Notes: generated by a model not told the origin, from the sequence alone. Shown: positions 1-54,406, counted from the stretch's first letter. The stretch: DNA of 64,000 nt from Anthoceros angustus (GCA_010909165.1 MU008152.1:372001-436000); one strand, 5' to 3'. Program-made: numbers and translations.

Positions 1-3000
1 CCGCTCAGTCTGGCTCCAGGGTGAGGAAGAGGAAGAGGAGAGGGAATGGCAGGAGGGGAGAGAGGGCGCCGTGGCTGCAGCTGCACGAACAGTGGGAAGA
101 AGTGGAGATGGCGGGCGGAGGAGGCAACCCTGGGGCAGCAAGGGTGCGCTCAGAGGAGGAGCAGGCAGCAGGGCAGCAGGCGGGGCTGGGACAGCGGAGG
201 AAGGCACCCAGGAGGAGAAAAGAGTCGCAGAGCTGTCTTGCTTCTACGGCGGCCTCGTGTCTAGGCTAGCCGCCTTGAGTTTCGCCGGCGGGAAGATTCG
301 CCCATTGCCTTACGCCGCGGTCAAACGGTAGTCGAAGAAACGGTGTTAAAGCCGCGTTCTAGGCGGCGCCGACGCGTGGAGGCTAACGGGGGCAGTTGTC
401 GACGCGTGGCCGGCCGTGACACACGAGAGGTGCTTTCGCGACGGCGAAACCCGTTTCGCCTTGAGCGCCGGCGCAAGGGCTCTCCAGGATGCCCTAACGG
501 AACGGGACGTGTGTGGGTGACAAATGGAGGACACCGGCTGGGCTGCTGCCGGGGGCACACTTGGTGACAATCGCTTCGCTTCTCATCGCCCGCTCATTGA
601 CTTAGATACCCTGTTTGGTGAAGCGCAAATGGCTGTGTTCCGAGAACGACTGCTGGCCCCGGCCTTTAAAGGACACTTAGCACCGAACAGCAAGTTACTA
701 CAACAACGAAACGACGTGTTATATGTAAGCACGGCCTGCTTTCTCCTGGTCCTGGCCCTGGCCCTGGCCTTGCCCTTATTGCCTTGCTTCTGTTGCTCTT
801 GCACCTGACAATGCAACAACCACTAAATTCGACTGTACGATTCTGTTTTCTACTCTGTGCTCTGTGCCCTTCCCTATTTCTTCACCCACAGCATGCCAGA
901 AACACGCTGACGAGTGTCCATTTGTGACCACCGTGGGGCACAACCTCCCCTCCTTCTCCGCATGTGCTTTCAAATTCAACCGCCCATTGTTTCCTATGCA
1001 TGCATCGCCTGCAATATTTTGATCTTTATCAGGATGTTTCTTCCCCCGGGTCTAGGAGCTTCCTCCCACAGCACACACCTGCGCATTGAGGTTACCTAAA
1101 TGGTATCATAAGTTCCAAATCCTAAGTAGACAAACATGGCTTCACACACGTTGTGGGGTCCGGGGACAAGACAAAAACATCACTATGGTACCTTTATAAT
1201 TTTAATCTTATACATGTATGTGGTTTTGTTTTGTGCATTCCACGTGGCACTGCGATATAACTATAACGGCTTTGTTTACAAAACATAAAGATTAATTCAT
1301 CCCGAACTTTTGAATTGAGATTTTTCATAGCATTGGTTCATCACGATTTTGTGTGTGCTAATAGTGTGGGAGAAGAGGTTTTTGAGCCCGGCTGGAGCCC
1401 TTTTTGATTAGGGGTTGAAACCGTCGGTGGAATATGAGCCGGTAAATACATACCCCTATTCTCCCTCCATTCTTTATGGATTCTTGATCTGAAAGTCACA
1501 GCGTGTAGGTGAGGACAATAATGGGACTTCACGTTTTTTAGGAGACCAACATGGTGGGAGTGAATTAAAATGCATAACTCAAAATACTCGGAAATAAAAT
1601 TTCCAAAAGAGGGTGGGTATATTGTGATGACCTAGCCCCCGCACGCTTTAGAATGCTTTCATAAACTTTTACTAGATCAAATCTCTTGATGGCTTTGCAT
1701 GTTAAATTGACTGAAAAATAAAGGTAAAAACCTGATTTGGCTATTCATCTTCCCTAAGGGTAGATTATCGTTTTTTCTCTAGACAAAGCAAACCTGCAAG
1801 TAGTTCATCTTCATAGACTAAGTTGAGTAAGGAAGATAGGGGTTTCAGGTTTACTCATCTCCCTCAAAGTTAACCCTCATTCTCGTATGTTACTAAGGAG
1901 AAGCATTTACAGGGCGTTTGGACTCTGTTGACTATGTCTAGCTGTAACCCAATTGACAATAGGATACACAAATCGTTGGAGACTGAATTGAGGGCATTTC
2001 TCTACGTAGTAGCCATCCAATATGTTACCAATATGCCATCTACCTAGTATGCTATCCAGTGTCTAAAAATTATAAAATAATATAGTTTAAGACTTTGGTA
2101 TATGATTTTATAGTACTTATTAATCACCCATCTTGAGATTTGTTTTTATTCCGTGAGTACATGTATTGATTTTGGTTCTCATTCTATTCAATATTCATAT
2201 TTTATCCTTCCTTTAATACATTAAAATACTTAGCTTATAGATTAGAGAGAGAACGCAATAAATTTTACCGGAAAGGACATAGTTAACCAAAAATCTTAGA
2301 AATCCCCACCATGACTCGTAGAAAACCCCAACCACGTTATGGACGTTAATATAGTAAGTGGGAGACCTTGGACTGTTCGTCGACTTCGTACTAGGTTCCT
2401 ATTCTTCCTTCCTATTGTACAGAGCGAACAAGTTGAACGGACAGAGCCCTACGTCACTTACAAATCGCCTGTTCCGCACACACCTCACGGTGGAAGAACT
2501 TTTCTTAAAAGCCTCGTTTTCTGGCTGGAGCTCCTCTCCGTTCTAGGCACCTTCGTGTTAAATCAGAAACTCACACGCCGCGGCCTGAGGACACCAAGCA
2601 GGCAGCAGGCAGCAGGCACCAGGCATCACGCGCTGAACATGGGGGTACATGATGTTTGCGGAAGTGTGACGAGTCCCTGGTCCCCTCTGGGGCCCTGATA
2701 CCTAGTTTGAAAGACACCAGATAAATCCGGGAAAGTTTTCCCGTCATAAAAATCATCACCAGACAATACAATACGACAAAACGAAGGAGGTCCTTTCTGG
2801 GCCAATGTGGGCATCTGCGGAAGACAAACCAGTAGATGCGCGACACCGACGCCCATAGAAGCACGCACCAGAAATAGGTGAAAACCACCTGACAGTGCAG
2901 GATCTTTGAGTTCAGGTTGGAACACTTGGCTCCTTGCTTTCAGCGCCGAGCATGAGGCACACTGCACATTGCATGTCAAATTAGGGTTCAATCGCCTTCA

Positions 3001-3702
3001 CTGACTATTCACATGACCGTACTAGATACTACCTTACCCGGAGTTTGGCCATATTATGTGCCTGCCGGCCACCATACCAAGTGTCAATTGCAACGGCTAT
3101 GCAAAGATGGTTTGGATTCTCTTCAGCCTTTTCCAGGATATCACCAGGTATGCACCAGGGGAGTCATTCAAGGAAAAAGGACAATCGAGGACAAACACGC
3201 CTCACATCGCGAAAGAGTCTAAAAAGCAAGCGAGCCCTAGAACGCTTACTTCCAACTGTTCGTGTGCCGTGACACGAAGCATCTTGCTCCCATAATGTCT
3301 CTCAATCTGCAAGAAGAGAACGATTAGCTGGAAGGCAACGCTTCAGCAAACTTATTTGAACTCAGAGCTGCCACAAGCAATACGAGTGAGTACCTAGCTG
3401 CGTTATTGCGCCTGCAGGAAACGCATCAGCCGCTAAGCTGATTCCTCTTAATGCTCCCTCACATTGCTGATATACTTACGCCAAATGGAAATCCGTAAGA
3501 TAGTGGTAACCAAACCTAGCACTCTTACAACGTACCAAATCACCGTTTCTGTCAACAAGATCTCGACAGTCCCTGCACACTCGGTTCTATTGTTTTCCTT
3601 GAATACAGCACTGGATTGTCAGCTGCACCCAACTCGAGGCACTACATCCTACACTGACTATGGTACAACACAGGTGTTCGGCAACAGTGCTGCCAGTCAC
3701 GG

Positions 3703-9040
<5,338 letters not shown>

Positions 9041-9822
9041 ATGAGCGGGCTGCGCAAGGACCTCAAAGCCCCACAGTAGAGAGACTCTGTTCGTGTGCGG
9101 TCCGTGTCACACTCACAGCAACCGCGGATCGGACCATCCGCCGACACGCTAGAAGAGGCAGCACCTGAGGGCACCAAGCAGGAGTACGCAATGCAGCTGC
9201 GGCGCTGGCTGTAGAGGCCGACAGGTACATTCCACCAGAGCCACCAACTCCCGCCAACCATGCGATGAGAGCAACGCACATGCAGGTCCTCTGGCAAATT
9301 GCACTCAAAGAAACTGCTTTCCACAGCACAGCAGCCGCAGCAGGCAGCAGGCAGCAAGGCGCCACCTGCAGAGTAGAGCGTCAACTTCTGAGCCACCGGC
9401 AAAGGTGCATTCCAATGCCGCTCCTGGTGTGTGCAACGAGACGAATTCCTTGGGCTGGGGCACTACTGCCAACAAGCTCCCGTCTACACTCTTGCCTCGG
9501 CTTGCACGGGATGAGGGAGTCGGCGCTTGCGGATTTTTCCGACACGAGGCAGCAAGCCGCGCGAGTTTGGCCGTGGGACAGATTCAAAGTGGTAAAGCGA
9601 GGGAGAGCTGTTGCTACGGCACAGCATTCACTTCACTCCACCCCGGTTGCGGTTAACTAGATAGTTAATGCAGGATCAGTCGTTGCTGCTCAGGCTCAGA
9701 ATAAACTCCATTTCTGGCTAAAACGCGATTCATGAATGAAAAGCCCGAAGGTAAGGGACGCGCTGTTCCGTTCACACAGTCGGAGCTTCAATCCGATACC
9801 ATTTTCCATGACCATACGTACT

Positions 9823-12800
9823 TTACACGCGCGAAGGCGAGGGACGCGCTGTCCCGTTCACTGGTGTGATTTTGGGAGGCGGTGGCGATGCGACGCTTGC
9901 ATTCCTCCTGGCCATCAAGGCACGCACAACCGGTCCCAGTTTCTCGCTCGTCTTGATCATCAGAAAGAAGAGCAGGCGGTAAAGGAATGCGTCGATGAAG
10001 AGAATGGCGAGGTTCTCCCACTTGTCTCGGCTCAGAGTGATTTGGTACGACTCCCGCAGCACATCCTCTCCTCGGATGTTGCTACCAAATGTGAGTCCCA
10101 GGAAGTCGTTCTGGTACATGCCCTGCTCGTGCAACGAGAATCATCAGCTGAGCGGTGTGACCCTGTCTCCAGGAAGAAGCAGTTAAGGATCTACATCCAC
10201 CGGACATTTACCTGTAGGGCGTACATGTGGAAGCCGATGTAGGACATGGGGTACCGCCAGAATGGCTTGGGCATGTCATTAGGCAGGCGGAAGAAGCCAG
10301 CCACAAGCAAGTAGATACCCTGCAGCCGGAAGTTTGCTTGTCAGTGGGCTTGTCTGGGCCCAAAGGCACCCACAGTGCAGACAGCTGGGCTTCCTTTGTT
10401 TGCAGCACCAACCTGAATACCAGCGCCTGTGATGATGCCCATGAGGAAATTCGGAACCACGCTTGCCACTGCCATCATGAGGCCCTCCACCACCAGCATG
10501 CACGCAAAGAGGGAGAGGATGAAGTAGCTGAAGTGGCCAAAGCCTGGATGGAGTTGCACCATGGAGTAAACTATAGACCCAGTAGCGAGTGAGATGAGGA
10601 AGAGGAAGGGCATGGAAGACACAGAGTTTGCAATCACAAACGCGGCAACTCCGTAGTGTCCGTTCAGTCTTTCTCGACTGAAAACCTGGCAGTCACAAAA
10701 TTCATGATGTGAGCTCTCCTTGTGCGGGCAGCTGCCTAGGCATGCGTTTGGCAACGTGCGCACTGGACTAGTATTCCAGAAGAGTTGGATCCTTTACCTT
10801 CATGTCCTCTACAAAGGAGGGGAACCCTCCTATTGCCATGAAAGTCAGGAAGCCGGCGATGAATGACATGCATGATGCTCTTGCCTGCATTCCGGAGAGT
10901 ATCTGGTGAGCACATTCCCTTCTTTTCTAGCCTACTGGTACCATACCTAGGTGGAATGAGATCATGGTGATGATGATCAGGCATACCTGAATGGAACCCT
11001 CGGTGACCCCAACTTTGTAGTAAACGGTTCCGATGCAGATGGCCAGCACGATGTAGATGGCAAGACGGAGCCAGTAGTAGCCCATGTCTCTAAACATGTT
11101 CACAAACGATCTTCGGGCGAGTGTGAAGGTCTGCTTGAAGAAGCTGGCGTGACTCCCTTTTGACTCCAAGACTGCGCCATGCTGCAGCACAATCAAATTG
11201 AACCACATGTGGTCATGGCAAGAATGCTGGCTGGAGCAGCTGAAGCATGGAAGGAGCAGGGCCTGGCGTCTGTCATGGTACCATCTGAGAGATCTCGTGG
11301 ACTTTGGCCCTGGCCGACATGGCGAAGTCGGAATCCTGGTATGCATTGACAAGAATCTCCATCCTCATGCTGGTGCTCATGGTGCTCATGGGGTCAGCTT
11401 GCTCGATATCGTCCTAGTACCATCAGCAGTAGAATTACTCACCAAACTGCCTGTAAGTGGAGTGATGTAAGTGGAGTGAACTTGTGAAGGAGATATGGTA
11501 CCATTCTGAGCTTGAAGGATCCTTTGATGGTGGCCGTCACCCTGTCGAAATCCGAGTTGATGGCTCGCAAGAAATGGTCGGATGGGTTGCGCCTGGCGGG
11601 ACAGGGGAAGCCGGCATCGGCAAAGTGCTGCGGCCAACAATTGCAGCGTCAGCTCGCCATCGGCACGAAACTTGCTGTCCAGAAAAGCGTTCTCCAAGGT
11701 TCAGAGCTGGGCGATGGCATACCTGGTGCGCGACACCGGCCTTCCCGAAGTAGACCGTCTGCCCCCCCGACAGAAGGAAGAGATTGTCGAAAAGCTCGAA
11801 CACCTCGCTGCTGGGCTGGTGTATGGAGGCGATGACGGTGCGGCCGTCGCGGGCCAGGTTCCTCAACGTGGTCACCACGAAGAAGGCGGAGGCACTGCGA
11901 CGCCATGGGAGTTGCGAACGTGACTAAAAGGCGGCGACGGCGGCGGCCATCTCCAATCCAGAGAGGCGGAAGGAACGTCATCAACCTACCTGTCGAGCCC
12001 GCTGGTGGGCTCGTCCAGAAACAGCAGGCGAGGCCGAGTCAGGATCTCCAACGCAATGCTCACCCGCCGCTTCTCCCCGCCGCTCAGCCCCCGCATATGC
12101 CAGTTCCCGATGGCCGTGTGCGCCGCGTCCTGCAGCCCCATCTCGTCGATCGTGGTGTGCACCAGCGCCATCTTCTCCGCCCTGGGCATGCTCTCCGGGA
12201 GCCGCAGGCTCGCCGAGTACGTGATCATCTCCAGCACTGTGAGCGTCCCCAGCAGGGTGTCGTCCTGCGTCACGTACGCCTGCAGCCAAGGCAGGGAGAC
12301 CACCACACTCGCCATCACAACCGAAATCACAACAATGTGCAACATCGCCAATGCCCGCGGACGCTTACCGATGCTCCAATCGAGAGTCTCTTCTTCTTCT
12401 TCCCGTTCAGATACATGTCCCCGGACAGCCTGGCGTTGGGAGACAGCCGCCCTGCCACAGCGCCTTCCCATGATCACCCCGATCGACAACAGCCAACAAA
12501 CAGCAAGCATGGTCTCCCCGTATCTCCATACCAGCCAGAGTGTCGAGCAGAGTGGATTTGCCCGAGCCCGAAGGACCCATGATGGCCGTGAAGCTTCCAG
12601 GCTCCGCATACCCCGTGAGCTTGCGCAGCAGAACCTGGGCTGCCTCCTCCCCGGCGCCTGCTGCCATGGGCACAGTGACAGTGACATCATTCCAGGCGAG
12701 GAACGCGCCCCCGCTGCCCACGACCGGGGCGGGGGCCGCATTGCTTCCCCGGCTGTAGCTTCTGAAGAGAGTCTGGCTGAGCGGGCTGAGCTCAGGCTGC

Positions 12801-12826
12801 GGCTGCACCGCCGTCAGCCCGGCCAT
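9823..12826 (-). CDS. ABCG (WBC) half-size ABC transporter, ABCG11/12/15-like, multi-exon
   Basis: Walker [20 protein letters not shown], signature [12 protein letters not shown], Walker [12 protein letters not shown] and [12 protein letters not shown] are present. TM exons include [17 protein letters not shown] and [17 protein letters not shown]. Stop at 9823. The start is uncertain: ATG 12826 is used, but an upstream exon is possible. Confidence 0.9.
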
Positions 12827-13616
12827 GCTCTCCACCTGCTGCGAGACGGGATGGGACGCTGGAGTCGACTCTCAGCCTGGGCTGGGCCGCTGGAGCTGGA
12901 GCTGGAGCTGGGCTTCCGGGACACGCTTGAGGCTGGGCTGGAGCTGGGAGAGAGCTGGATTTTGAAGGCGTGTGCAAGTCCGTGCCACCAACCCGGGCCC
13001 CGCTCGGACGCCATTGATGGCTCTGGCTCCGCGTGGGTAGGTGAAGCCGCGGTCGCGCAGAGGATCAGATTAGGCCTTCAACTCCCGCTGCCCGGACTGC
13101 CGCTTAATCGCACAACTGTCATGAATTCCAGGTCCCAGGACATGGTACTTGCACGCCATCGTAATGTCGACAAGGAAGGTCCGTCACGGAGTCAACCCGC
13201 GCTAACCCCCCACTCCGCACGCCCCTCATCAAAGACTATTAACTCCTCCGCCATGGCAATCCCACCACCATTCCCCCATCATCGCCACCTAATACCCAAA
13301 GAAGCTCTCCATACTTGAAAGCGCACACTCGTGCTTTACCAAGACCATGCGTGCCTCGGGCTTCACATTTCATTTACCTTCTCAAACCATCTGCCAGCGT
13401 CTCACAAGGCCTCTATCGACTTCAATCTGGAAATGCACGCTTGCCGAGCTCGGGATTCACAAACTTCTGCCAGCAGGCCATTCAGAGAGTCCCGTTCGTC
13501 AGACAATTTTTACTGTCTCGCGCAAGGGATTGGGTGCTAAGCTGGGCAATTTGTAGTTCTCGTGTAAAGGGCTTCATGGAATGCCGATGGAAGACGAGTT
13601 TTGCATCCAGCTTTGT

Positions 13617-13672
13617 GGAGCAATTGGGTATGGTACGCTGTCGTGGAGCAATTGGATATGGTACGCTGTCGT
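13617..13672. repeat. 28-bp tandem duplication (2 copies, 1 mismatch) upstream of the ABCG gene
   Basis: ggagcaattgg(g/a)tatggtacgctgtcgt occurs at 13617-13644 and 13645-13672. Confidence 0.9.
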
Positions 13673-15359
13673 GGGTACAGTTGACGGTCGCCATCTGGGC
13701 AGGTGGGTAGCTTGGCATGCAGACGAAACGCGCCAAATTCAGTGGGCCTCTTCATGGGATGGGCAACATCTCTTTTATCCCTCCGTGTGAAGGGCACACC
13801 AGTTCTAGCTGGTGTTGCCCACAGTCCTCAACAATGTGACCTTCGTGAATGCGCGGATTTGGTAGTTACGGAATCGCGATTCGCGACCCTCCGACGCTAA
13901 GAGCTCACTGATCAGGTCGTGTGGCCTACATTCAATCGTCAGTCCTTCTCTTGAGACTGTAGCCGCTCTGCCTAAGCTCGTAAATGCAGGGCACCCCTCC
14001 CTGTCCAGGATGTACCTCCATCGCTCCACAGCTTGATGTGCTGTAAAACTGGTTTTTTAGCGAATTTAATTTTTATTTATGCTGTTCCCTAATATGTACA
14101 CAAAAGCCAAGATTCTCGGGGCAAGCGGGCAAGCGAGAGGGAGAGGATTACCCTACCTAACCCCACAACGCTGAAAGGGTTTCCCCTTGTTTTGAGCTAA
14201 TTATTAGTTTTCAATGAGACGTAATTAAGAAAAAAATCCGGGGACCCTATTCAGAACTCCTCGATTACGAGTGCCTCTTGCTCTACCGACTCATGTGTTC
14301 TGGAAAAACGTGAGCCTCATTCCTTCCCGTCACTTTTTTCAATGTCTCTTTGCGAACTTCATAGCCATGTCCGCATGGAAAAGCATCTATGCTCGATGTG
14401 GTCGCCTCCCAATAACCCACGTTGAGCAAACATTATCACCAAAACACCACAGCACAAAGCACTTGGTCACCAAGTTTGGAACATGAGAGACTTTCATAGC
14501 GGCCGCAATAAATTTTGAAACAAGGAACCACACCTCCATAGCTATGAAGCGGTAGGCCAAACTATCTACAAAAAGTCTCCAAAATTGGGCTGCTTCTACT
14601 CGCTTAGGCCAACTGCTTGACGACGCTACCGGCCTCAAGCTTGGATATTCAAAGAATATGGTGTAGATTGCCATGTCATAGTGAGGCGGCCACTGGACCT
14701 CGCATTGGCGGAGGTCATGGAGAGGGAGCTCAGTGTGAGCGCCTCAAATTCACTAGAGCCATAGGTAGATGCAGTGGTGCTTGCGCGCAGCCACAGGCTC
14801 GATCGTGGCCTTCTTGGTCCTGTGCTGGCGCTACCAAGCATGGACCCTGTCCCAGAGACTAGCCTGCTACCGCATTATGGCTATGACTGCCTCGCAATGT
14901 CTTCTTAAAATTGGTGATATTTGATCTCCCCGAATATGTTTGTGGTAGCAAAATTGAAATTTCGCTAAAAACAAAAAGTATGTATGTAGTAGTCGATTTT
15001 TCACCTCAATAAAAACCTCTCTACGTAGTAGTCAGTATATGTAACTACCTACTGCACTACAGAAACGTCGAATGTTTTAAAGCACATTAATGTGTTAGTT
15101 GCTGAAGAGGTTATCCCCGGCTGCGCACCGGTTCTGTTGTTTATTATCCCTAGAATGTTGAATCCACTCATATTGAGTCGTTCAACTCACTTTTTGGGCT
15201 CTTGAATTTCTTTTAAACGCAGGTTCCACTTGGAACCTTTGAGCGATGTCTGTAGATGGGGTGGGCAGCGCGTTAGATTTTACAATACAAAAAACAGACC
15301 CCCATAGGCACATCCAGACCACATGTTACTCTTTGTTGAGCTAAATTCTCTTGTGGGTA

Positions 15360-15385
15360 AACAAGGTCTCCTAAGACCTGGAGAC
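15360..15385 (+). repeat. Left 26-bp terminal inverted repeat
   Basis: Perfect inverted match to 18396-18421; identity breaks off on both sides. Confidence 0.9.
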
Positions 15386-16567
15386 GGCTCCTCGTCTTTG
15401 GTTTTGAGGGGGTGAAATTTGGGGCTTGGAAACAAAAAAGCCTGAATTTCATAATTTGCAGAATTTAAAAAAAAAATTGCATGATAAAGATGTGACTTTA
15501 AGAATGAAACCATGCATTTCAATGGTTTTAAGGTAATAAGACCTTCACATGGTCTACACTCCTCCAAGTTCTCATGAATCAACTGCCAATTCTTTAAGAC
15601 AGATACGTGCAATTTTTAGGCCGCACAAAATGGATATTAAAAAAAGGTCCACAAAATGAGTTTAAGGGTCCGTAAACTGACCAGAAAAAAGGAGCGACGC
15701 ACATTGTAATGTACTTGTATGACCCCGGACATCTGGTGAATGTGCGAATGGTATGAATCCGTTAGCTGGTGCAGGCCCGAGGTTGCAATGCCTTGGAAAT
15801 TGGATGAAATTTTCGAATTTCATACCGGCTGGCCTTTCGGACACACTATGCGGAAATCTATTTACAATTGCGGGTTCAATGCGATCATTCCACGCATCGT
15901 GACATGGCACACATCTGTATGGTTACATGCATATGATGAATGCATTCATCATGTCCGTGACTAATCACCCACGCGGCGAAGCCTTTCCACTACAACAGAC
16001 CCCGTGTGGCCGTGTTCAAACCGATTTTCTTATAGCAATGCATTTCGCTCTTCGTTCGTCTGGTATAAGCGCCCAGCATGGTTGATATGCGATTTGCAAT
16101 TCCGATAAGGTCTCGACCATGACACTTCACGCACATGGACGAGGCTCGGAATCGGGTGCCACTACCGGCCTTCCCTACGCCTCAGTCTCGAAGGGGGGGC
16201 CAACTCATGTACGCCAATGCGTCGGCCCATGACCGCAAAGGCTCGGAATGCCGATTGAGGCTGCGTAATCCCTTTCCGGTGTTCGATTGAAGGATATGCA
16301 TGACGATGCTCATCGATGCAATGTTATTTAGGTGCCGACCATGTTTGTACCATGCCTGAGCAGCCATCGTGAACGAAAAATGGTACTGCAAGCCGAGCTT
16401 AGAACAACGGGACACCGTGGACACCGAACAGCAGCCTTTATCACCGGCTGTCCGGTGTTATGCAAGACTTGGGGCCGCTATCTACATCGCAAGTTGTCTC
16501 ACAATGTTTGGAGTCCAACACAAAAAGCAACGTTAACCAAACTGGTCGTCTGCAGGTTTCCTAGCCC

Positions 16568-17831
16568 TCACACATCTCTCCCAATCCCGGATTCAGATGC
16601 CACGAGTTTTTTTTGGCTGTCCGCCCAGTCGTTGTCTGGAGAGTCAATCAAGCCATCATACTTCTTGGTCGCCGTCTCAAGGGGATGGAACTCTGATCCA
16701 TTAGCCCCCCCCAATGTTGTAGCAAAAGCCTCTTCTCCAGCCATCTCGCCAATGTGCGCTGCGCGTTTCTCACTAACCTCCCCTGCACTTGTCGACGGAT
16801 GTCCTACAACACCAGTCGAAAGTGAATCTGACACGCCTCCAAATGTGCATCGCGTCTTCTTGTCTGCACGCCGCTTCAGACCCACAAAACAACCTCGGCC
16901 ACCTGCGACAGTGTTCACCATGGGCTCTTTGCTGCACGTCTTGGGTGCTGCATACCCGTCAACGTCTCCTACCTCCTCCTCCTCGCTTGGCCAGTTGTCC
17001 ATTGTATTGAGCCGCAAATCCATGAATTGCACTGCTCTAGGATCTATGTCTATCGAAATGACATTGCGGCCAGACTTGAGGGCTGCTACCATACCCAAAC
17101 CAGAGCCTGCGCATCCATCTAGGACCCACTTGCCTTCCATTGTGTACAGCTCAATCAACTTCCTCAACAACCTAATGGGCTTCAGTGCGGAAACCACCAC
17201 ATCATCTGACTTATCATCGTGTTGTAACATAGCTTATGTTCCACAGCCTTCTCAACAAAGCAAGTTGTCAACCCTCTGCCGTCATTCATAACATCGCTTG
17301 ATGCCGAGGAGAAATCAAGGCATAATCCGCTTTAATGAGCCTGCGCCCGTGGTGATGTAATCCCATCATCATCTGACTTATCTGGAGGTGCGTCACATTA
17401 GTTTTGTGCCAGAAGGAGGACGTGACACCACCTTTACATGCTGCAAGCAAGACTTCACGAACCATGGACTTATCATCAGGCGAATGGAATACCACGACTC
17501 GAAAAACCTCAGACGTTGTGATGCCCTGGAATGTCATTATGATCTTCTCAAATTCATCACGAATGAACCGCGTGTCATACTCCCTGGAGTTTGCATCCAA
17601 ATTCAACCCCCGGGGCAAGTCCAACAGAATCATGGCAAACGGACGGGGTTCTAGAAACTAGGCCATCTGCACGATGTTGCCACATACTATACCTACCCTG
17701 CAGGTTCTTTCAGCGTCATCTCTGAAAGTCTTTAACTTTTCGGAACTGGAGGCCTCCAACAATTGTCGCTGCTCATCCAACAATTGTCGCTGCAAGTATG
17801 TTTTCTGGCCTTCTGAGATTGTTGTCGCCAT
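16568..17831 (-). pseudogene. Beta-class N6-adenine/N4-cytosine DNA methyltransferase (N6_N4_Mtase-like), disrupted
   Basis: One frame from ATG 17831 reads ...IVCGNIVQMA*FLEPRPFAMILLDLPRG (motif IV-like; in-frame TAG at 17658-17660). After frameshifts, ORF 16568-17230 reads KPIRLLRKLIELYTMEGKWVLDGCAGSGLGMVAALKSGRNVISIDIDP (motifs X, I, II). Catalytic motif before SAM-binding motif is the beta arrangement. Confidence 0.8.
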
Positions 17832-17936
17832 TGATGTTTTTGTCAGTGTTGTTGCTTTGGGTTGTGTTGTCTTCCGGGTATTTGCTGGTGCTGCTGATGG
17901 TGCTGATGCTCATGCTCATGCTGGTGCCGAAAGGTT

Positions 17937-17945
17937 TTAGGGTTT
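17937..17945 (-). promoter_or_regulatory. Telo-box (AAACCCTAA) about 110 bp upstream of the MTase ATG
   Basis: The + strand has ttagggttt at 17937-17945. Telo-boxes are a known plant promoter/5'UTR motif; function here is not shown. Confidence 0.35.
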
Positions 17946-18395
17946 GACTACTGATTGTTATGGTTTATTATTCAGATGGCGCATTCAGGCATAGAGGGTG
18001 TACAGCTTAGGAGACTAGCGTAGGAATGAGCACGTCTGGTTTTGGTTTCTCGCCACAGATGCTCACACAATCGGCAACAATGCTTTTGTTCATACCTTCA
18101 CACACACTTTGGTCTGAAAACGTGAGGGACATCGGTTAAAGTTGTTACAATTTGGGCATCGTGTGAGCTGGTGCTCATCGGACATCCGGGTTTTGGCCAA
18201 CTGTTTTCATTCGCCTTCTCCCCGTTGACGGCACTTGCCGGTGTTTAAGCTATCTCTTTTTATAAGTGAAGTAAAGCAGCCTGCCTCCGGCGGTCTGGTC
18301 TAGTGGCCAGTGTTCGGGTTTTAAGCACAAATTGTTCCGTGTATTTCAGATAGCAAATGTGTAGAAGGGCAGTTAATTACTAAAAAGAGGGGTGT

Positions 18396-18421
18396 GTCTC
18401 CAGGTCTTAGGAGACCTTGTT
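18396..18421 (-). repeat. Right 26-bp terminal inverted repeat
   Basis: GTCTCCAGGTCTTAGGAGACCTTGTT is the reverse complement of 15360-15385. Confidence 0.9.
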
Positions 18422-19429
18422 GGTACACTAGATGGCTAGCGCATTTCCCACACGGTGGTGGAGAGTGCGCCGGCCGTCCAGCACACTCTCGAGCTCTTTA
18501 AATTTGTTGCTAAATTCATGAGTTCAGTATAAGTTTATGTCTTATACTTAACTCGGCCTGCAAGTGTCTTATGCCTAACATAGCTTCGCCAGAGTGTTTT
18601 TAAGTTCTTTAGTGGTGAGTTCGCATATCGTCTAGTACAATTAATTGATTTATGTTGAGAATGACTAATTGAACTGCGGATGCGCCACCGTCGCACTCCC
18701 TGCCACTCTATGCTGAGTGCGTCGACCGTCTAGCACACCTGTAGGGTTTCCCTCAATGTTTTCATCTGAACCTAAGGCTTCGGAGATGGTGACAACTCAA
18801 GTAGTCTACTGCATGGAGTGTTTGTCTGTGTTTGTCGATAGACTACACCACAATGCATCAATTACAAAATACAACACAAATGTCTGCCTCTCGTTCATGG
18901 CAGGTATGGGTTACCGTCAGCCATTCCAATTGCTATTAGTCTTTTGCTAACATGTATATGTGTATTTAACAATACCCTTGCCAAAAACCTAGCCTACACC
19001 AACAAAACTAATGATATTGGTACCCTTCCAATCTAATTCTTAAATTGGGCGATATTTGATCTGTCATAAAACTACGCCGCATAATCGACGTAGTCCCCAC
19101 AAAGAGAGGGGCCTACACTGGCCAACCGGGCACCTTCAATACAACTTTGGTAAAAATATCCTTCATCCCTTAGATATCCCCCATGACCTAGTGGTCCCGA
19201 ACTTACTGCCAAACAACAAAACCTAATCCATCTCCCTATTTGCAAAGTGGATGTAGAAAAAGCAAGCGGCTTTCGGATTATTTTGCAGTTGCACCAACTA
19301 GGTCTTCCCGGAGATCCTAGGAGATAAAACTATATACCTAGATAGAAGGATGTAATCATATATTCTAATAAGATGGCAATTACACCACCATTGCATTCGC
19401 TTGGAAATATTGGTAGGAAGCATTGGCTT

Positions 19430-23483: not shown

Positions 23484-26400
23484 CAGGGTGAGGAGCACTT
23501 CCGGAATGGCAGAGACGTCGAGAGTTAACGGTACCCAAGACCTGTCATGTACTTGGTCCACTCTCATGCAGGGAATACTGTGGCCTCCGCTTTCACGCTG
23601 GAGACTGGTGTCTGTTGGCAAGAGAGAACAACATCTGGCTGTCGTGTCTTCACGGAAGACGTGCCTTGGTAGTAGTAGTGTCGGAGCAGGTAGACATGCG
23701 GTATATATTCCAGATGCCTCGGTAAACAAAGAAACTTGAAGGTAGCCAGTCCTGGCCTCAGCGTTTGCGAAGGGGTAAGGCAATAGCTACAGATTTAGAT
23801 TTGGCAACGTTGGAACCCGCGCAAGATTAACTTCATGCCTCTGGTGTCAGGCCATTTGATCTTTACATAGTCCGCTTCTAGGGTAAGCGCTGGTGCAAGT
23901 GGCCATGATACGCCAACAGTTGGGCACGTCATATCTATCTGCCCCTTCCTGGAGCCTGGATTTGGCTATGCAGGTGGTGTGAAAGCCCCGCTCCCCGGAG
24001 AAGCATACTTTTCTCACTGTGTGTCGGAGGTCCTGTTGTTTGTGGATAGGTACAATGGACCCACGTCGAAGGGGTGGAAGCCCAGTCGGTGTCATCGCCA
24101 TCGCGCCCAGTGGCTTCGAACAAGAAGGACAGAGAAGCCACTTCACTATGTGTATGCTTGCCTTGCCGGAGACTGGAGAGGATAGACTTCACAGCAATCA
24201 TATCTTTCTTGTAGGCTACCGGGGACAACAAGCTGCCCTTATTAGCTTGGCACGTGTCTTACTGACCCGCTCAATCAAACATTGTTGCCCTCGCCGGGGG
24301 CCAAAGACACTGTCGGCAACTACATAATATTAAAACTTGTCCTTTCCAGAGCGTCACCCACTGGGATAAATTACCAACCGATCTTCTGACTACCTGTGCC
24401 CTACGCAGGGCCAGAAAGGGAGAGAAAGCTTTTATAAATATAAGTTAAGCCTCTTATTCTGTTAAAAATTAGATATTTAAGCTGCTCCCATGGATGGTAA
24501 AGAATAGGATAGGGCATGTGCCATTTTTGGGACTTTTAAACTTTTCACCTTTTTAAGTATGTAAAGAATATTTTTCTTTCGAGAAGGACTGTAAATTTAA
24601 CTTGACTCATTAGTATGTGCATCATGGTGTGTATGGGCATATAAAGCATAGATTTCTTGGTGTTAGGTACTCAAGGGATTATGGTTGGTCCTAGTATTGT
24701 ATGGGTATATTTATTTATATCCGAAGCCAGTGGCAAAGTTAATGTCAGACTTTTATCTTAATGATTGCTACATTTTCAGATTTGAGTATACATATTTTCA
24801 ATTGGCTCTAACCCGAGAATAGAAAAATCCAAGGATTATCGATCCAGATATTTCATAACAAGAGAAAGGAATGTCATAGATTTTGGAGGCATTGATGTTA
24901 ACACTATCTCTAAAGACACTCCACTTTGCATACCTCCGAAGTTGACTAAAGTTATCACTTACAAGTGATAGCTGATTACTTAGAAGACCTGAGAGAAAGA
25001 ATGTCAAAGATTTTGCAGGCATTAATGTATACACATCACAAATTACATACCATTTTGTGTACTCTCTAGAGTTCAGCGCGAATGATGAACTTCAATATAG
25101 CATTTGTGATATACCTAATGGTTAGGTGAAGACTCATCTAAACTCCAATATGCCGGTTACATAATATCTACTCTTTTTGATTCTTAATGCATTTTAATTT
25201 TATTATTTATTAAATTACATAATAATAAAATATTTAATTTCTTGGTCTCCAGTTGTTAAGGTTCTCAACTCTAAAATATTTATGGTAAGTAAATATATGT
25301 GTAGAATTGTGTGTGGGGGCTGGTGCAGTGTGCAGAAATTGTGGTGTAGGCTGCTCCCGAACGTGAGAAGAGTCGGTATCTGTCATGTCCTGATTGGACA
25401 TGAAAAGATAGTTTACGGAAAAGTAACTTGACGCTTTGAAATATTGTTGGATGGCTAAAATAAGGAGCATAATCGTGGCTGGTGGGTGCGTGTTTGGGTT
25501 TGGGTGAGGCCCCGCAAGCAAAGAGGAGTCGACAAGAGAAACGGTTTTGGAGAGTGCGTGCCGTCACAGGTCACAGAAGCGAACGTGCGAGCGTGTGTGA
25601 TGGATTACCGCGACTTCATAAGCAGTGAGTGAGGGATCATGGTCCCTGGTTGGGCTCCGCAGATGCGCCGGCATATAACCCTCCACGATGCACCATCGCA
25701 CACTCGCAACAGCAACAAACAACAAAACCCCAAGCAGCCGAACAGGCCAGCGGCCAGCGGCCAGCAGCCAGCCGAGGCTTGGCCCCACGCCACAGCCAGA
25801 TTCGGATAATCTTCCTCCCCCCGCCTCCGCCAACAAGGAGACGGAGCTTCTGAGCATGCTATGAGGCGGCTGGGGCTGGGGCTGGGGCTGGGGCTTCGGC
25901 TGCGGCTGCGGCTGCGGCGCCAACCCTAAAATCCCACACCAACAACTTGCTTTGTCCGGCCACGACAATCAGGACAAAGGACGCCCGACGCCCTTGAACA
26001 CCACCGTTTATGCCGTAAGTGATTCCCGGCCCAAAGCCCGGGAATCATGAATTTGTAGGTATATCAGCGCGCGCCCAAGCCACGCATATTCTTCCTCTGG
26101 CGCTGCACAGTAAAAAGGCGGGGGGGAAGGAGGTGGGGGGCATAATCTACCCGGTTATTATGTACTCATGTGTATGTACACATTAGGGCACGCGGCAGTG
26201 GGTAGAAAGAGAAACTGGGTGTGTGGGTGTAGAGAGAGAGAAAGCGGGCGAGTCCAGGGTCCGAGGCCGGGCGGGCGGGCAGGCGTGCAGCGGCGCGTGA
26301 CAGATTCTCTGGAAGTTGTGCTGGAGTCGTCACTCCACTCCGGGCCTGCGCTGTTGGCTGCTGGCGTGGTGGAAGGAATGCGTTCGATGCCAGCTATTTC

Positions 26401-46959: not shown

Positions 46960-49755
46960 ATGGCGGAGCTGGCCGTTCCGGGCGGTTGTGCCCCACTGGC
47001 GAGCTGGAGCTCGGTGGACGCTCGTCATTCTCGGGGGCCGGCAGGATGTGAAACGGAGGTATCGTCTGAAACTGTGCGCAAGCTATGCCAGCAGGGGCAG
47101 CTCGATAAGACCGTTGAGGCTCTGGGAATTCTGGTGCACTCCGACTGTCACGTCTCCAAATCTCTCTTTCATACGGTCCTCAGAGAATGTGTGGTTAAGA
47201 GGGATCTGTATCTGGGTCGCCTAGTCCATGCTCTGTCTGTGAAGGAGGGATACGAGTCGGACACGTTCTTATGCAACCACATCCTGAGAATGTATGGTTC
47301 CCAAGCCAGGTTGGGGGAAGCGATGGATGTGTTCACCAAGGTTGCCAAACCGGATGCCTTCACGTGGTCTGCCCTGATTTCTGCGCATGTGAAACACGGG
47401 GAAGATAAGCAGGCCATAGAGCTGTATCATCGGATGCGCAGGAGCAGTGTGACGCCAGATGGCCATGTCTTTGTAGCAGCGCTTCAGGCTTGTGCGCGAG
47501 GGGCGGACTTGGAATCTGGGCAGCTGGTGCATGCTGATGTAGTGGCCAGTGGCGTTGAGCCTGATTTGTTCGTCTGCAGTGGCTTGGTGGACATGTACGC
47601 AAAGTGTGGCAGCTTGGAAGACGCTCACAGAGTGTTTGACGGGGTGCCTTTCAAAGATGTGGTGATGTGGAATGCCATGATAGCAGGATATTCCCAGCAG
47701 GGCATGGGTGAGGAAGCCCTTGCTCTTTACACTGCAATGCGACAAGAAGGCATCGCTGCACCCAATTCTGTGACATTTGTCTCCCTCCTGCAGGCATGTG
47801 CAAGTGTGGGCAGCACGGCTTTGGAGAAGGGGAAGCAGCTTCATGGAGAAATTAGAGATCGTGGACTGCGGGCTGATGTAGTCCTTGGTGGGAGCCTTGT
47901 GAACATGTACGCAAAGTGTGGCAGCCTAGGGGATGCCCGGTGCGTCTTTGACCGACTTTCTGAGAAAGATGTCGTGACGTGGAACGCCATGATAGCAGGG
48001 TACTCACAGAAGGGCAAGGGGGTGGAGGCTCTTCATCTTCTCAATGCTATGCAACACGAGGGCATGGTTGCACCCAGTGCCTTGACATTTGTGTCCCTCT
48101 TGCAGGCATGCGCAAGTGTGGGCACCCTGGCTATAGACGTGGGGAAGCAGCTTCATGCACATCTTAGAGAAAGAGGGCTTCAGACTGATGTCTTTGTGGC
48201 CAACAGCTTAGTAAACATGTACGCAAAGTGTGGGAGCCTGGAAGATGCGCAGGAAGTGTTTGACGGACTCGGTCAGAAGAATGTGGTGACGTGGAATTCA
48301 GTGATAGCAGGGTATTCTCAGCAGGGCATGGGGCAGGAGGCCCTTCGTCTGTACAATGCCATGCAAGAAGCAGGCATCATTGTACCCGATGCTGTGACAT
48401 TTGTGTGCCTCCTGCAGGCATGTGCTTGCTTGTCCACCGCCGGTTTGGAGAAGGGAAAGCATCTTCATGCTCAAATTAGAGAACAGGGACTTCAAGCGGA
48501 TGTCTTTGTAGCCAGCAGCTTGGTAAATATGTATGCGAACTGTGGAAGCGTAGATGATGCTCGGAGCGTGTTTGACGGACTCGCTGAAAAAAATGTTGTG
48601 ACATGGAATGCCATGATAGCTGGATATGCCCAGCAGGGCTTGGGGCATGAATCCCTTGCTCTGTATAGGGCTATGCAAGAAGAAGGCATGCCTGCACCTG
48701 ATGGTGTGACATTTGTGTCCCTCCTACAGGCATGTGCAAATGTAGCAGCTTTGCATCTGGGAAGGCAGCTCCATCAACAGATTAAAGAACAAGGGCTTCA
48801 AGCGGATGTCCTTGTAGCCGGCAGTTTGCTCAACATGTATGGGAAGTGTGGTAGCATGGTTGATGCGCAGCGTGTATTTGAGGCATTACCCGAACGAGAC
48901 GCAGTCGCTTGGAATGCACTGATTGCAGGCTACACTCGTCAAGGAGACAGTGAAGTGGTCTTTGACTTGGTTCCCAGAATGAAAGAGGATAGCATACAGC
49001 CAGACAGCATAACGTTCCTTAACGTACTAACGGTGTGCAGTCATACAGGCCAAGTGAACAAGGCGCAAGAGTACTTTGAGGCAATGAGCGCAGACTATGG
49101 CATCATTCCCACGACAGACCACTACACATGCATGGTGGATGTCCTGGGTCGTGCGGGACTTTTGGACAAGGCACTAACTGTAGTAAGAACAATGCCTGCC
49201 CTGCCTGATGCTGCTGTTTGGCATACTCTGCTAGCTGCTTGTCGAAAGTGGAGCAACGTGGAGGTGGGGCGCCATGCTTTTGATGAAGCAGTGAAGCTAG
49301 ACAAGCAAGATGACGCTGCATATGTGTCAATGTTGAATATTTACACAGGGGCCCAGATGTGGAAGCAGGCAAAGGAGATGCAGGAGAATAGAATGAGAAA
49401 CAGGGCATGGAAGCAGCCAGGCCAGAGCTGGTGGACAGACATGGATGGGCTGGTGCATAGCTTTTTGGTTGGGGATCAGAGGCATCCTGGAAGTAAAGCA
49501 GGAGTGAGCAATCACCTTATGTCTGAATTGAAGACACAAGGGGTTGTGTCGAATTCGGAGTCTTCCCCGCCAGACGTAGCTGATGATGAAAAGACTAATC
49601 ATTTGTTTGATCACGTTCTAACGCAGTGTAAAGTAGTTGCCCTGACTAAGAGCAGCCCAGGGGATCTCGAATTTCAAGGTTTGCTTCGTTTACGGTATGG
49701 CCATGGCCTTCACATCGAAAGTAGAGAACCAATCCATGCTTCTCAGTGGTGCTAG
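46960..49755 (+). CDS. PLS-class PPR protein with E domains and PGxSWW box; DYW domain degenerate/frameshifted (organellar RNA-editing factor family)
   Basis: 931-aa intronless ORF of P-L-S triplets (VVTWNAMIAGY / VTFVSLLQAC / ANSLVNMYAKCG), E1/E2, KQPGQSWWTDMDGLVHSF, then DVADDEKTNHLFDH. Confidence 0.93.
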   Translation: MAELAVPGGCAPLASWSSVDARHSRGPAGCETEVSSETVRKLCQQGQLDKTVEALGILVHSDCHVSKSLFHTVLRECVVKRDLYLGRLVHALSVKEGYESDTFLCNHILRMYGSQARLGEAMDVFTKVAKPDAFTWSALISAHVKHGEDKQAIELYHRMRRSSVTPDGHVFVAALQACARGADLESGQLVHADVVASGVEPDLFVCSGLVDMYAKCGSLEDAHRVFDGVPFKDVVMWNAMIAGYSQQGMGEEALALYTAMRQEGIAAPNSVTFVSLLQACASVGSTALEKGKQLHGEIRDRGLRADVVLGGSLVNMYAKCGSLGDARCVFDRLSEKDVVTWNAMIAGYSQKGKGVEALHLLNAMQHEGMVAPSALTFVSLLQACASVGTLAIDVGKQLHAHLRERGLQTDVFVANSLVNMYAKCGSLEDAQEVFDGLGQKNVVTWNSVIAGYSQQGMGQEALRLYNAMQEAGIIVPDAVTFVCLLQACACLSTAGLEKGKHLHAQIREQGLQADVFVASSLVNMYANCGSVDDARSVFDGLAEKNVVTWNAMIAGYAQQGLGHESLALYRAMQEEGMPAPDGVTFVSLLQACANVAALHLGRQLHQQIKEQGLQADVLVAGSLLNMYGKCGSMVDAQRVFEALPERDAVAWNALIAGYTRQGDSEVVFDLVPRMKEDSIQPDSITFLNVLTVCSHTGQVNKAQEYFEAMSADYGIIPTTDHYTCMVDVLGRAGLLDKALTVVRTMPALPDAAVWHTLLAACRKWSNVEVGRHAFDEAVKLDKQDDAAYVSMLNIYTGAQMWKQAKEMQENRMRNRAWKQPGQSWWTDMDGLVHSFLVGDQRHPGSKAGVSNHLMSELKTQGVVSNSESSPPDVADDEKTNHLFDHVLTQCKVVALTKSSPGDLEFQGLLRLRYGHGLHIESREPIHASQWC

Positions 49756-50192
49756 TCGAGGCGATGTGTAAAAGTGTGACGCGGCGAGACCTCACCCTTC
49801 AGGATGGGAGTCGCTGGTTTCACGTCGTACCCCAAGCTGTCGTCACATCAAAATGCGTAGTACATCAAGTCCCCCCTTGCGACGGTGTGTGCAGAGAGTA
49901 TGTAGGTAGTCCTTTCCGATGGAGATGCCAGACGCGAATTCGAATGTATGCAAAACTGGGCCTCTTAGAGCCCTAGGCCCAGCACGTGCTCCTGGCAGCA
50001 TGGCTTTCTGGAGCGATGCAATTGAGTCACGAACACAGCAACAGCATCCCTGGTGGGCACAGGTTCTGTGTACCCAAGTCGCTCGGAAGGGTTCCCGCTC
50101 AGCCGACTCAAGGATCCAACCGCTGGGAACAAACGATGGCTCAACGGGGAGCAGTCAAAGTCTGCTGAGATAACACCAACACGAGCTCCCAT

Positions 50193-53828: not shown

Positions 53829-54406
53829 TGGCATGGAAGATCTCGTGTGTGGGCACAGCCGATATCTTCGGCCTAAGCCTAGCAGTCGGGTTGGAAAAGG
53901 TGAGCAGGAAGGAAATTGTCCGAGAAAGGACCATGTAGATGTGTTTGTAGACTCCGATCTCGCGTGTACTATTCGCACTGCATGCTTTTCACAGACGTTA
54001 AAAACCTCAGCAAGTAGCTAGACAGATCTTCTCATTTGATGCCATTGTAGTCGCAGCGTTGATCAGCTGGACCCGACATACGCTTGCTGTGAGAGGTAAT
54101 AATCAAAACCGTTGCGAGGGTTTTGCGCATTCTCCTGTAGTTTGATCTCTGCGTCCAGTGCCGAATTGCAACCACAGGCCTTGCAGATGACTTGTGATTG
54201 GTCGTGGCCAGATCCATGGCTCACAGGTTGTACTCACCTCTGTGCCTCTTGCACTATCAGGTTTACAACGTGCTCCTGCATGCGATGGCTGTCAGGAGGG
54301 TAACGGGAATTGTTGGAAGAGCCTCCGCTCAGTCAACTTCAAGGATCGGAAACAGGGAGGCCTCGAGGTCCAGCACCTTGGATAGAAAGCTAGCTCCGCC
54401 AAACCC

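Follow-up and report, generated by a model that had tools for sequence, protein, structure and literature searches.

The window, that is, the whole 64-kb stretch of DNA analysed here, contains a pair of terminal inverted repeats (TIRs) that, together with a short direct duplication, bound an element of 3062 bp (15360-18421). The left TIR (15360-15385, plus strand), starting with 5'-AACAAGG, is the exact reverse complement of the right TIR (18396-18421, minus strand; 26/26 positions), and the tetranucleotide GGTA lies directly outside both arms (15356-15359 and 18422-18425). This confirms the perfect 26-bp TIR pair with abrupt ends and flanking GGTA that had been described in an earlier interpretation of the same DNA (hereafter, the sequence-only reading). 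The accompanying assertion that such a match is not fortuitous also stood up: with up to three mismatches allowed, the 26-nt TIR had no further match in the 64-kb window beyond the two arms, 100 dinucleotide-preserving shuffles yielded zero matches, and a looser terminus pattern returned the same two sites only. No other copy of the element was found within the window. The element ends are not compatible with a duplication of 5 bp; four bases at fixed positions agree by chance with a probability of 1/256. A repeat search gave longer arms of 37 nt (86%), with the perfect match itself ending abruptly; the extension comprises four consecutive mismatches, at the GGTA/TACC positions, followed by six matches out of seven. 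These mismatches are expected for a non-palindromic direct duplication, and we read the extension as a partly palindromic target site rather than as a longer repeat.

The interior of the element harbors a remnant of a PF01555 methyltransferase on the minus strand. Its C-terminal piece (16568-17230), comprising the AdoMet-binding motif I (DGCAGSG) and the tail, matches PF01555 at E 7.3e-10 and 39.6 bits (Pfam cut-off 26.7; the related protein P0002 scores 30.0). An exhaustive search retrieved the methyltransferase relatives P0002-P0009, which align at 44-61% identity, a range that also holds for the C-terminal piece and P0002-P0005. A middle piece, lying in another reading frame (17200-17331, minus strand) and identified by translation and by tblastn of P0003 and P0005, matches the family block preceding the QKP motif and is flanked by frame changes on both sides. 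The N-terminal catalytic piece (17286-17633, minus strand; 52% identity to P0005) carries DLPRG instead of DPPY at motif IV in the alignments. Upstream of it, an in-frame TAG stop (17658-17660, minus strand) separates the catalytic piece from an N-terminal extension detected by tblastn (17661-17846, minus strand), and residues 32-185 of P0002 cover positions 17846-17358 in a single frame. When the translation is compared with the relatives, the TAG occupies the position of a conserved residue within their FLEPR block, so it is not part of an intron. A 16-nt direct repeat is present at both frame-change points.

Compared with its relatives, the window copy additionally lacks ~20-35 codons of the target-recognition region and reads SALKP in place of the family motif SPYQKP. 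A single in-frame stop, an internal deletion and two changes of frame leave it without an intact open reading frame: the gene is a pseudogene and this copy of the element is dead. The sequence-only proposal that the enzyme marks or protects the element therefore fails for the window copy, since a pseudogene cannot mark or protect anything at this locus.

A profile of the methyltransferase family matched CcrM across the whole domain (E 4e-13), followed by DpnA, M.MboIIA and M.RsrI, and motif IV precedes motif I, the order of the beta class. The profile places the window's motif IV position on the DPPY of CcrM. Rather than the catalytic (D/S)PP(Y/F), the window copy and its closest relatives read DLPRG, and copies from the liverwort Riccia sorocarpa and from fern-like contigs read D(I/V)PYG, close to the canonical form. 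Given that DLPRG lacks an aromatic residue, methyltransferase activity is doubtful in the window's clade, intact copies included.

Full-length relatives of the element, 7.6-9.6 kb in size, come from R. sorocarpa, from fern-like contigs of metagenomes and from the assembly of a single sequencing run. Each contains three genes, encoding a DUF7869 protein, a protein with a ParB-like fold and a beta-class N6/N4 DNA methyltransferase. This layout recurs in four fern-like ENA contigs (L019, L022, L067 and L070), in R. sorocarpa chromosomes (L092 and L094) and in a contig of SRR33208241 (L093); in L002, the open reading frame upstream of P0002 corresponds to the C-terminus of the ParB-like gene. The genes form two divergently oriented units, one being DUF7869 (~850 aa), the other the ParB-like gene followed by the methyltransferase. 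Some gene models annotate the latter two as one fused gene. The search for longer, transposase-bearing copies proposed in the sequence-only reading thus succeeded in other genomes, in the form of a putative DUF7869 transposase inside TIRs.

The termini of every member examined (L019, the L022 subfamily, L067, L070, L092, L094 and L093) start with AACA, and TIRs of 21-37 nt were present in L019, L022, L067, L070, L092 and L094. Five copies of the L022 subfamily stop at the same base, beyond which their flanks differ; sharp boundaries with unrelated flanks were hence observed on relatives, not on the window's own genome. Locus-specific 4-bp duplications flank three of the five complete copies (GGTA in the window, TGTT at L067 and, in a chromosome-level assembly, ATGA at L094), and none was found at L019 or L070. 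Under our assumption, these two metagenome assemblies of a multi-copy repeat may be chimeric. The anticipated pairing of TIRs with locus-specific duplications around methyltransferase homologues was accordingly borne out in full for L067 and L094, and at L019 and L070 for the TIRs but not for the duplication. Taken together, inverted repeats at both ends, duplications of fixed length and differing sequence, and sharp boundaries are the features of a class II cut-and-paste element.

A direct link between the window and this family comes from L093. Its terminus (positions 1807-1817) is identical to the first 11 nt of the window element (11/11), and positions 1827-1844 match 15380-15397 at 17 of 18 nt, in both cases offset by 20 nt from the end of the element. 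The match includes a left subterminal stretch (15386-15397, plus strand) absent from the window element's right end, and the L093 terminus is placed as in the window, on the downstream side of the methyltransferase and with matching orientation. Overall, the match is short (30/38), and the other end of L093 is off the contig. No flanking TIR was detected within the short contigs of the other close methyltransferase relatives (L002-L005 and L007), the TIR 20-mer was not found in metagenome and viral collections, and the window proteins were not present in the searched protein collection. Within the window, tblastn found no relics of DUF7869 or of the ParB-like protein (nothing below E 0.6), which agrees with the earlier description of an interior holding a methyltransferase and no recognisable transposase. 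The window element therefore shares a terminus with the family while lacking its transposase; the view of it as a non-autonomous member of a methyltransferase-carrying TIR family is upheld by full-length relatives having the same gene, AACA TIRs and 4-bp duplications.

For the putative transposase, Pfam gives only DUF7869 (E 1e-53), a domain that databases list solely without a function and that the literature searched does not mention. Three aspartates are invariant in 33 DUF7869 sequences; in the segment that was modelled they are D144/D147, D225 and D267. The AlphaFold model (pLDDT 82.9) locates them past strand 1, past strand 4 and on the helix that follows strand 5. The best PDB fold matches were all RNase H-like (among them RNase HI, IstA, retroviral intasomes and a CAST transpososome), at weak Foldseek E-values of ~1e-3. 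DDE/DDD transposases are characterised by such a fold combined with three acidic residues at canonical positions. DUF7869 is multi-copy in Riccia and has relatives in plants and in a coral. Judging from predicted fold, motif and context, it is likely the transposase of the family.

The ParB-like protein had no sequence-level Pfam or PDB match. Its model (pLDDT 80.5) adopts the fold of the ParB N-terminal domain, with ParB, Noc, KorB and sulfiredoxin as best Foldseek matches (probability 1.00, E 1.5e-5). The pair of ParB-like protein and DNA amino-methyltransferase is kept across liverwort, fern-like and gymnosperm sequences, and the methyltransferase gene has introns in the fern-like and Riccia copies. 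Between fern-like copies, the methyltransferase had dN/dS values of 0.02-0.11 and the ParB-like gene of 0.10-0.16, as compared to ~1 for a 3' non-coding control, indicating that both genes are under strong purifying selection in the relatives. The sequence-only reading had regarded the methyltransferase as captured cargo. Instead, it behaves as a conserved family gene under purifying selection in relatives, and the occurrence of the same methyltransferase in every full-length relative indicates that it is a native accessory gene of the transposon family, not captured host cargo.

We consider it highly probable (roughly 0.87) that the window element is a non-autonomous member, shortened by internal deletion, of a land-plant cut-and-paste DNA transposon family. 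A complete element would span 7.6-9.6 kb, with TIRs starting 5'-AACA and target-site duplications of 4 bp. The window copy would retain the two termini together with the methyltransferase end, have lost the ParB-like gene and the transposase, and have inserted at GGTA, presumably moved in trans by a DUF7869 transposase; its methyltransferase is a pseudogene today. As to the accessory module of intact elements, our best guess is ParB-targeted adenine methylation: the enzyme might modify the element or nearby DNA with the ParB-like partner as targeting factor, and might thereby regulate transposition or blunt host silencing. A more far-reaching scenario is possible, though we hold it only tentatively. 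Here, DUF7869 elements would constitute an undescribed lineage of plant, possibly also animal, DNA transposons, with a self-encoded ParB and adenine-methyltransferase module as their defining trait; the module would recognise palindromic arrays specific to the element and place methyl marks on its DNA, to time transposition or escape host silencing; the DLPRG clade would be a derived form with changed or lost activity.

Other explanations of the locus were weighed against the internally deleted copy. The gene might still work and deliver an active enzyme, the stop and frame changes being introns or assembly errors. Introns do occur in the fern-like and Riccia copies, the window copy retains an intact DLPRG block and motif I, and assembly errors are conceivable. 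However, the TAG sits inside a block that aligns residue for residue with the relatives, the conserved SPYQKP motif is altered, and no GT...AG pair fits the junctions read. Moreover, the region between the frame changes is already shorter than in every relative, so that an intron there would cost the target-recognition region even more sequence. We regard a working gene as very unlikely.

Even less probable, in our judgement, is a Pack-type origin, in which transposon ends captured a host gene that has no particular bearing on the family. Plant TIR elements are well known to pick up fragments of host genes, and the methyltransferase alone sits between the window TIRs. Against this, the gene occupies the same end, in the same orientation and beside the same neighbours (ParB-like and DUF7869), in Riccia, the fern-like contigs and SRR33208241; it is under strong purifying selection between element copies, and the exhaustive protein search returned no close stand-alone annotated host homologue. 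Lastly, the inverted repeat could be no transposon end at all but have been left behind by an inversion, or by some local rearrangement near a gene in decay, the GGTA match being accidental. The repeat pair is the only one in the window, a 4-bp match is expected by chance once in 256 cases, and the 16-nt direct repeat at the frame-change points is a sign of microhomology-mediated rearrangement. Yet another genome has a full-length element at whose boundary the 11 terminal and 18 subterminal nucleotides reappear, at the same position relative to the methyltransferase, AACA ends are found in every member examined, and 4-bp duplications recur, leaving such a rearrangement extremely improbable.

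The window feature itself is ordinary, a dead non-autonomous transposon copy. The family it belongs to appears to be unannotated so far, and the combination of a transposase, a ParB-like protein and a DNA methyltransferase was not found in the literature searched. Transposons with their own DNA-modifying enzyme bear on the contest between mobile elements and host epigenetic defence, for which a land-plant cut-and-paste element with an adenine-type enzyme, if borne out, would provide a new test case. Such an element might, in addition, account for 6mA or 4mC signals in these genomes. For annotation, methyltransferase matches of this type in bryophyte, fern and gymnosperm genomes should be assigned to transposon genes rather than to host chromatin enzymes.

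Among DNA transposon superfamilies, characteristic duplications are 3 bp for CACTA, 8 bp for hAT, 9 bp for Mutator, TWA for PIF/Harbinger, TA for Tc1/mariner, and TTAA for piggyBac and Kolobok. All seven were rejected on the grounds of 4-bp non-TTAA duplications and AACA termini, in line with the sequence-only statement that the rules of CACTA, hAT, Mutator, Mariner and PIF do not fit. Sola elements, as Bao, Jurka, Kapitonov and Jurka are said to have described them in 2009, have DDD transposases unlike those of other superfamilies and 4-bp duplications, and occur in plants and animals; we take Sola to be the candidate superfamily lead for the DUF7869 elements. The likeness lies in the invariant aspartate triad, the RNase H-like fold, the 4-bp duplications and the plant and coral relatives. 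We know of no description of Sola elements with a ParB-like gene and a DNA methyltransferase. As of 2017, Sola had no Pfam family (PMC5751038); DUF7869 might be the one that was lacking.

Bacterial and phage modules of ParB-like and PF01555 proteins show the same pairing of a ParB/Srx-fold protein with a beta-class amino-methyltransferase. Such pairing is common in phages and plasmids. It is also touched on in PMC4738411. CcrM is the best relative of solved structure. Here, in contrast, the pair belongs to a TIR transposon of eukaryotes and contains introns, and gene models differ in showing it as split or fused. Motif IV reads D(I/V)PY in the Riccia and fern-like copies and DLPRG in the window's clade. 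As Ds does with respect to Ac, and dSpm likewise, the window element keeps its termini, has lost the transposase, is flanked by a duplication and presumably needs a full-length partner; unlike Ds and dSpm, it belongs to a different family and its interior is an accessory enzyme gene, not a transposase fragment.

Mobile elements with a DNA-modifying enzyme of their own further include DNMT-bearing retrotransposons of dinoflagellates and algae, fungal KDZ transposons linked to TET/JBP genes, and DIRS1. These are retrotransposons with C5 methyltransferases, or carry dioxygenases, whereas the present family, found in land plants, is of the cut-and-paste type and brings an amino-methyltransferase together with a ParB-like protein. 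The DIRS1 methyltransferase-like domain and cases in Trichomonas have been described (PMC4738411). Finally, Marchantia MpDN4MT1a/b and bdelloid N4CMT belong to the same Pfam family, PF01555, and N4CMT structures were among the PDB matches of our family profile (E 1e-8). Both are host genes with an SPPY-type motif (TSPPY in MpDN4MT1a/b, according to the Marchantia preprint) and are not described as transposon-borne. The transposon family, unlike these, has D at the SPPY-type position, and among solved structures it matches adenine enzymes best.

The arm at 15360-15385, once reverse-complemented, matches the arm at 18396-18421 at every position (26/26), and GGTA directly adjoins both outer ends. 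The terminal inverted repeats (TIRs) and the 4-bp target-site duplication proposed in the sequence-only reading are thereby confirmed. With up to three mismatches allowed, matches to the 26-mer were restricted to these two arms, the sole pair in the window, with none in 100 shuffles; a looser terminus pattern again returned just the two arms. A repeat finder lengthened the arms to 37 nt at 86% identity, the added stretch consisting of four mismatches, which coincide with GGTA, and then 6/7 matches. This is the pattern expected of a direct duplication within a partly palindromic target site, and the distribution of mismatches is unlike that of an older, longer inverted repeat, which we rejected as the source of the extension. 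Outside GGTA, the flanks (15349-15355 versus 18426-18432) are complementary at 6/7 positions, implying that the target site was an imperfect palindrome; such sites are common for dimeric transposases. The window's TIR 20-mer had no match in metagenome or viral collections.

The window itself is nuclear land-plant DNA, coding for a RUNKEL-type kinase, an ARID/Myb protein and a pumilio-type NABP protein, with a GC content of ~50% and no tRNA genes found. Positions 46960-57313 hold a local tandem expansion of PLS-class PPR genes: three intronless copies that have E motifs, encode 931, 1211 and 968 aa and share 72-80% identity. Further downstream, a direct repeat of ~92% identity (58191-59011 versus 63248-64000) reaches the window end. 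Another direct repeat (23/26; 14902-14927 versus 19037-19062) lies ~450 nt to the left and 615 nt to the right of the element. Sensitive comparison extended it to just 39 nt at 79%, and as this weak match was all that turned up, a larger LTR-like repeat structure around the element was dropped.

Within the element, pieces of a PF01555 (N6/N4) DNA methyltransferase lie on the minus strand, the C-terminal piece (16568-17230) passing the Pfam cut-off. Comparison with relatives revealed an in-frame TAG within a conserved block (17658-17660, minus strand) and two reading-frame changes between 17394 and about 17235 on the same strand. The variable middle region is short of some 20-35 codons, and the conserved SPYQKP motif of the relatives reads SALKP. 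Judged against its relatives on these features, the window methyltransferase is a pseudogene. An exact direct repeat of 16 nt (extending to 31 nt at 77%; 17185-17215 / 17352-17382) marks both frame-change points and suggests that microhomology mediated a deletion or rearrangement within the gene. The methyltransferase previously noted between the TIRs is therefore present but, given the stop, frame changes and lost codons, dead in this copy.

Its 220-aa open reading frame (ORF) and eight other ORFs of the window had no exact match in the protein collection, and a word-indexed protein search with the methyltransferase returned just one weak bacterial match. An exhaustive HMMER search recovered a small family of close relatives (P0002-P0009, unnamed proteins) from one sequencing-run assembly (SRR33208241) and one ENA assembly. 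Around the close relatives on L002-L005 and L007, no flanking TIRs were found, and homology among these contigs is confined to coding sequence. One of them, L005 from SRR33208241, carries a 31-nt inverted repeat (1566-1596 / 2087-2117; 97%, arms 490 nt apart) beside a methyltransferase fragment, which looks like an unrelated MITE.

When metagenome contigs were scanned with the trimmed family alignment, many of the matching ones came from ENA assemblies ERZ1034375-ERZ1034427. These have a GC content of ~39% and include one PPR gene; the closest named proteins to theirs come from the ferns Ceratopteris and Adiantum, so their source is probably a fern. On the fern-like contigs, the methyltransferase has a distant, full-length relative that invariably takes third place in a three-gene unit. 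The first gene, an ORF of ~850 aa on the strand opposite to the other two, matches Pfam DUF7869 (E 1e-53), while the second (~560 aa) has no Pfam match. The same layout occurs on two Riccia sorocarpa chromosomes (L092 and L094) and on contig L093 from SRR33208241, the sample that also holds the window methyltransferase's closest relatives; on L002, the second gene's C-terminus is encoded by the ORF upstream of P0002. In Riccia sorocarpa (L092 4531-9180) and in Ginkgo biloba gene models (P0263 = Gb_10123 and P0018 = Gb_37443), this second-gene region, which is ParB-like, is fused to the methyltransferase (670-856 aa), extending the family to gymnosperms. Splicing may join the two accessory ORFs into a single gene. 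With the layout shared among relatives, the methyltransferase is a native gene of the family and not captured cargo, which corrects the cargo reading first given. On L092, two gene models (1-3804 and 24013-24286), each with Ion_trans and EF-hand domains, flank the element and its neighbourhood; they may be a tandem pair or parts of a single gene interrupted by insertions.

All termini identified in the relatives start with 5'-AACA, like those of the window element. L094, in a chromosome-level assembly, carries an element (5063-14616) with 36-nt TIRs flanked by ATGA on both sides; on L067 (about 707-8393), imperfect TIRs of about 35 nt are flanked by TGTT on both sides. No flanking 4-bp duplication is present at the L019 element (180-7773; TIRs of 37 nt, 97%) or the L070 element (about 3150-10952; imperfect TIRs of about 35 nt), plausibly owing to chimeric flanks in metagenome assemblies of a multi-copy repeat. 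The left end of the L092 element falls within an assembly gap, leaving 21 nt of the TIR visible and the duplication unreadable. In the L022 subfamily, five copies terminate at the very same base, beyond which their flanks are unrelated. The fern-like, Riccia and SRR33208241 relatives thus bear out the postulated methyltransferase-carrying transposon family, and the longer copies sought, encoding a putative transposase (DUF7869, see below), exist in these other sources.

Contig L093 ties the window element to these units. Its element boundary lies ~530 nt past the methyltransferase stop, in the same orientation as in the window. The first 11 nt of its terminus are identical to the window's; nine variable bases follow, and then a 17/18 match to window 15380-15397. 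This matching stretch reaches 12 nt past the window's 26-nt repeat, and those 12 nt are not found at the window's right end. By this end-specific homology, the left end of the window element corresponds to the terminus nearest the methyltransferase in an element of this kind. Neither the DUF7869 nor the ParB-like gene left a trace in the window, marking the window element as a deletion derivative, in line with its proposed non-autonomous nature.

Sequence comparison connected DUF7869 neither to known transposase Pfam families nor to solved structures. An alignment of 33 members revealed three invariant aspartate positions. In the AlphaFold model (pLDDT 82.9, pTM 0.80; core beta1-2-3-alpha-beta4-alpha-beta5-alpha), two of these follow strands 1 and 4, respectively, and the third lies on the helix that comes after strand 5. 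This placement corresponds to the RNase H-like layout of DDE/DDD transposases. The top PDB fold matches are all RNase H-like (RNase HI, IstA, retroviral intasomes, CAST transpososome), with weak E-values. Riccia has multiple copies of the protein, which also occurs in ferns and a coral; we infer it to be the transposase.

The second gene likewise had no sequence-level link to ParB; its C-terminal 289 residues, when modelled (pLDDT 80.5), gave fold matches to ParB, Noc, KorB and sulfiredoxin with probability 1.00. Short palindromes or repeats are clustered in arrays in full-length relatives, for the most part in the region separating the divergent genes, and their sequence differs by subfamily (L022 3687-4096; L093 3673-3944; L092 4300-4329, 8006-8211, 8691-8773, 10047-10079 and 12035-12151; L094 6772-7044, 8800-9050, 11509-11540 and 13569-13595). 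None were found in the window copy. As the second gene is ParB-like, these arrays could be candidate parS-like binding sites, and their element-specific sequences would suit a putative ParB-like binder.

The methyltransferase family profile aligns full-length with CcrM (E 4e-13), followed by DpnA, M.MboIIA and M.RsrI, classifying the family by sequence as beta-class. Identity with Marchantia DN4MT1 or rotifer N4CMT was ruled out by motif (TSPPY in Marchantia versus the D-type here) and context. A viral origin was rejected, IMG/VR returning just four weak matches, to generic methyltransferases. ParB domains were absent from the contigs of the prokaryotic methyltransferase relatives examined. 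At motif IV, the Riccia and fern-like copies have D(I/V)PYG, and DLPRG is found in the window (~17616-17602, within the piece 17286-17633), P0002, P0005, P0006 and L093 (3195-3455). With Arg where the aromatic stood, the window's clade has lost the aromatic catalytic residue, yet the altered block was kept, being invariant across five sequences otherwise just 45-60% identical. Catalysis in this clade may be altered or lost while the protein is still constrained.

Between fern-like copies 89-96% identical, dN/dS was 0.02-0.11 for the methyltransferase and 0.10-0.16 for the ParB-like gene, against ~1 for a 3' non-coding control in the same comparison, indicating that the ParB-methyltransferase module is maintained by selection as elements spread. 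The window unit is a TIR-bounded element with a 4-bp duplication, and full-length members of its family encode an RNase H-fold protein of the DDD type. This DUF7869 protein would bind the AACA termini, excise the element and reinsert it through a 4-bp staggered cut; having no gene for it, the window copy would depend on a full-length partner to move. Given perfect TIRs and duplication around a badly damaged gene, the damage was probably inherited from the source copy rather than acquired in place. As to the module, our first preference is that methylation of element DNA might couple transposition to replication, by analogy with bacteria, where Dam methylation does so for IS10 and Tn5. Interference with host silencing is a possibility we place second, and a ParB-type clamp bridging element DNA is a possible third.

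Duplication length and termini exclude CACTA, hAT, Mutator, PIF, Tc1/mariner, piggyBac and Kolobok, extending the misfit to several of these superfamilies already noted from the sequence. The Sola superfamily, which occurs in plants, combines DDD transposases with 4-bp duplications as its defining features; the DDD protein, 4-bp duplications and plant hosts of the present family agree with it, making Sola a candidate superfamily. The literature searched contained no mention of DUF7869, and a 2015 survey of eukaryotic adenine methyltransferases includes no land-plant, transposon-borne combination of ParB and a beta-class enzyme (PMC4738411). The window feature itself is an ordinary relic; its family is an unusual, apparently undescribed TIR-transposon variant.
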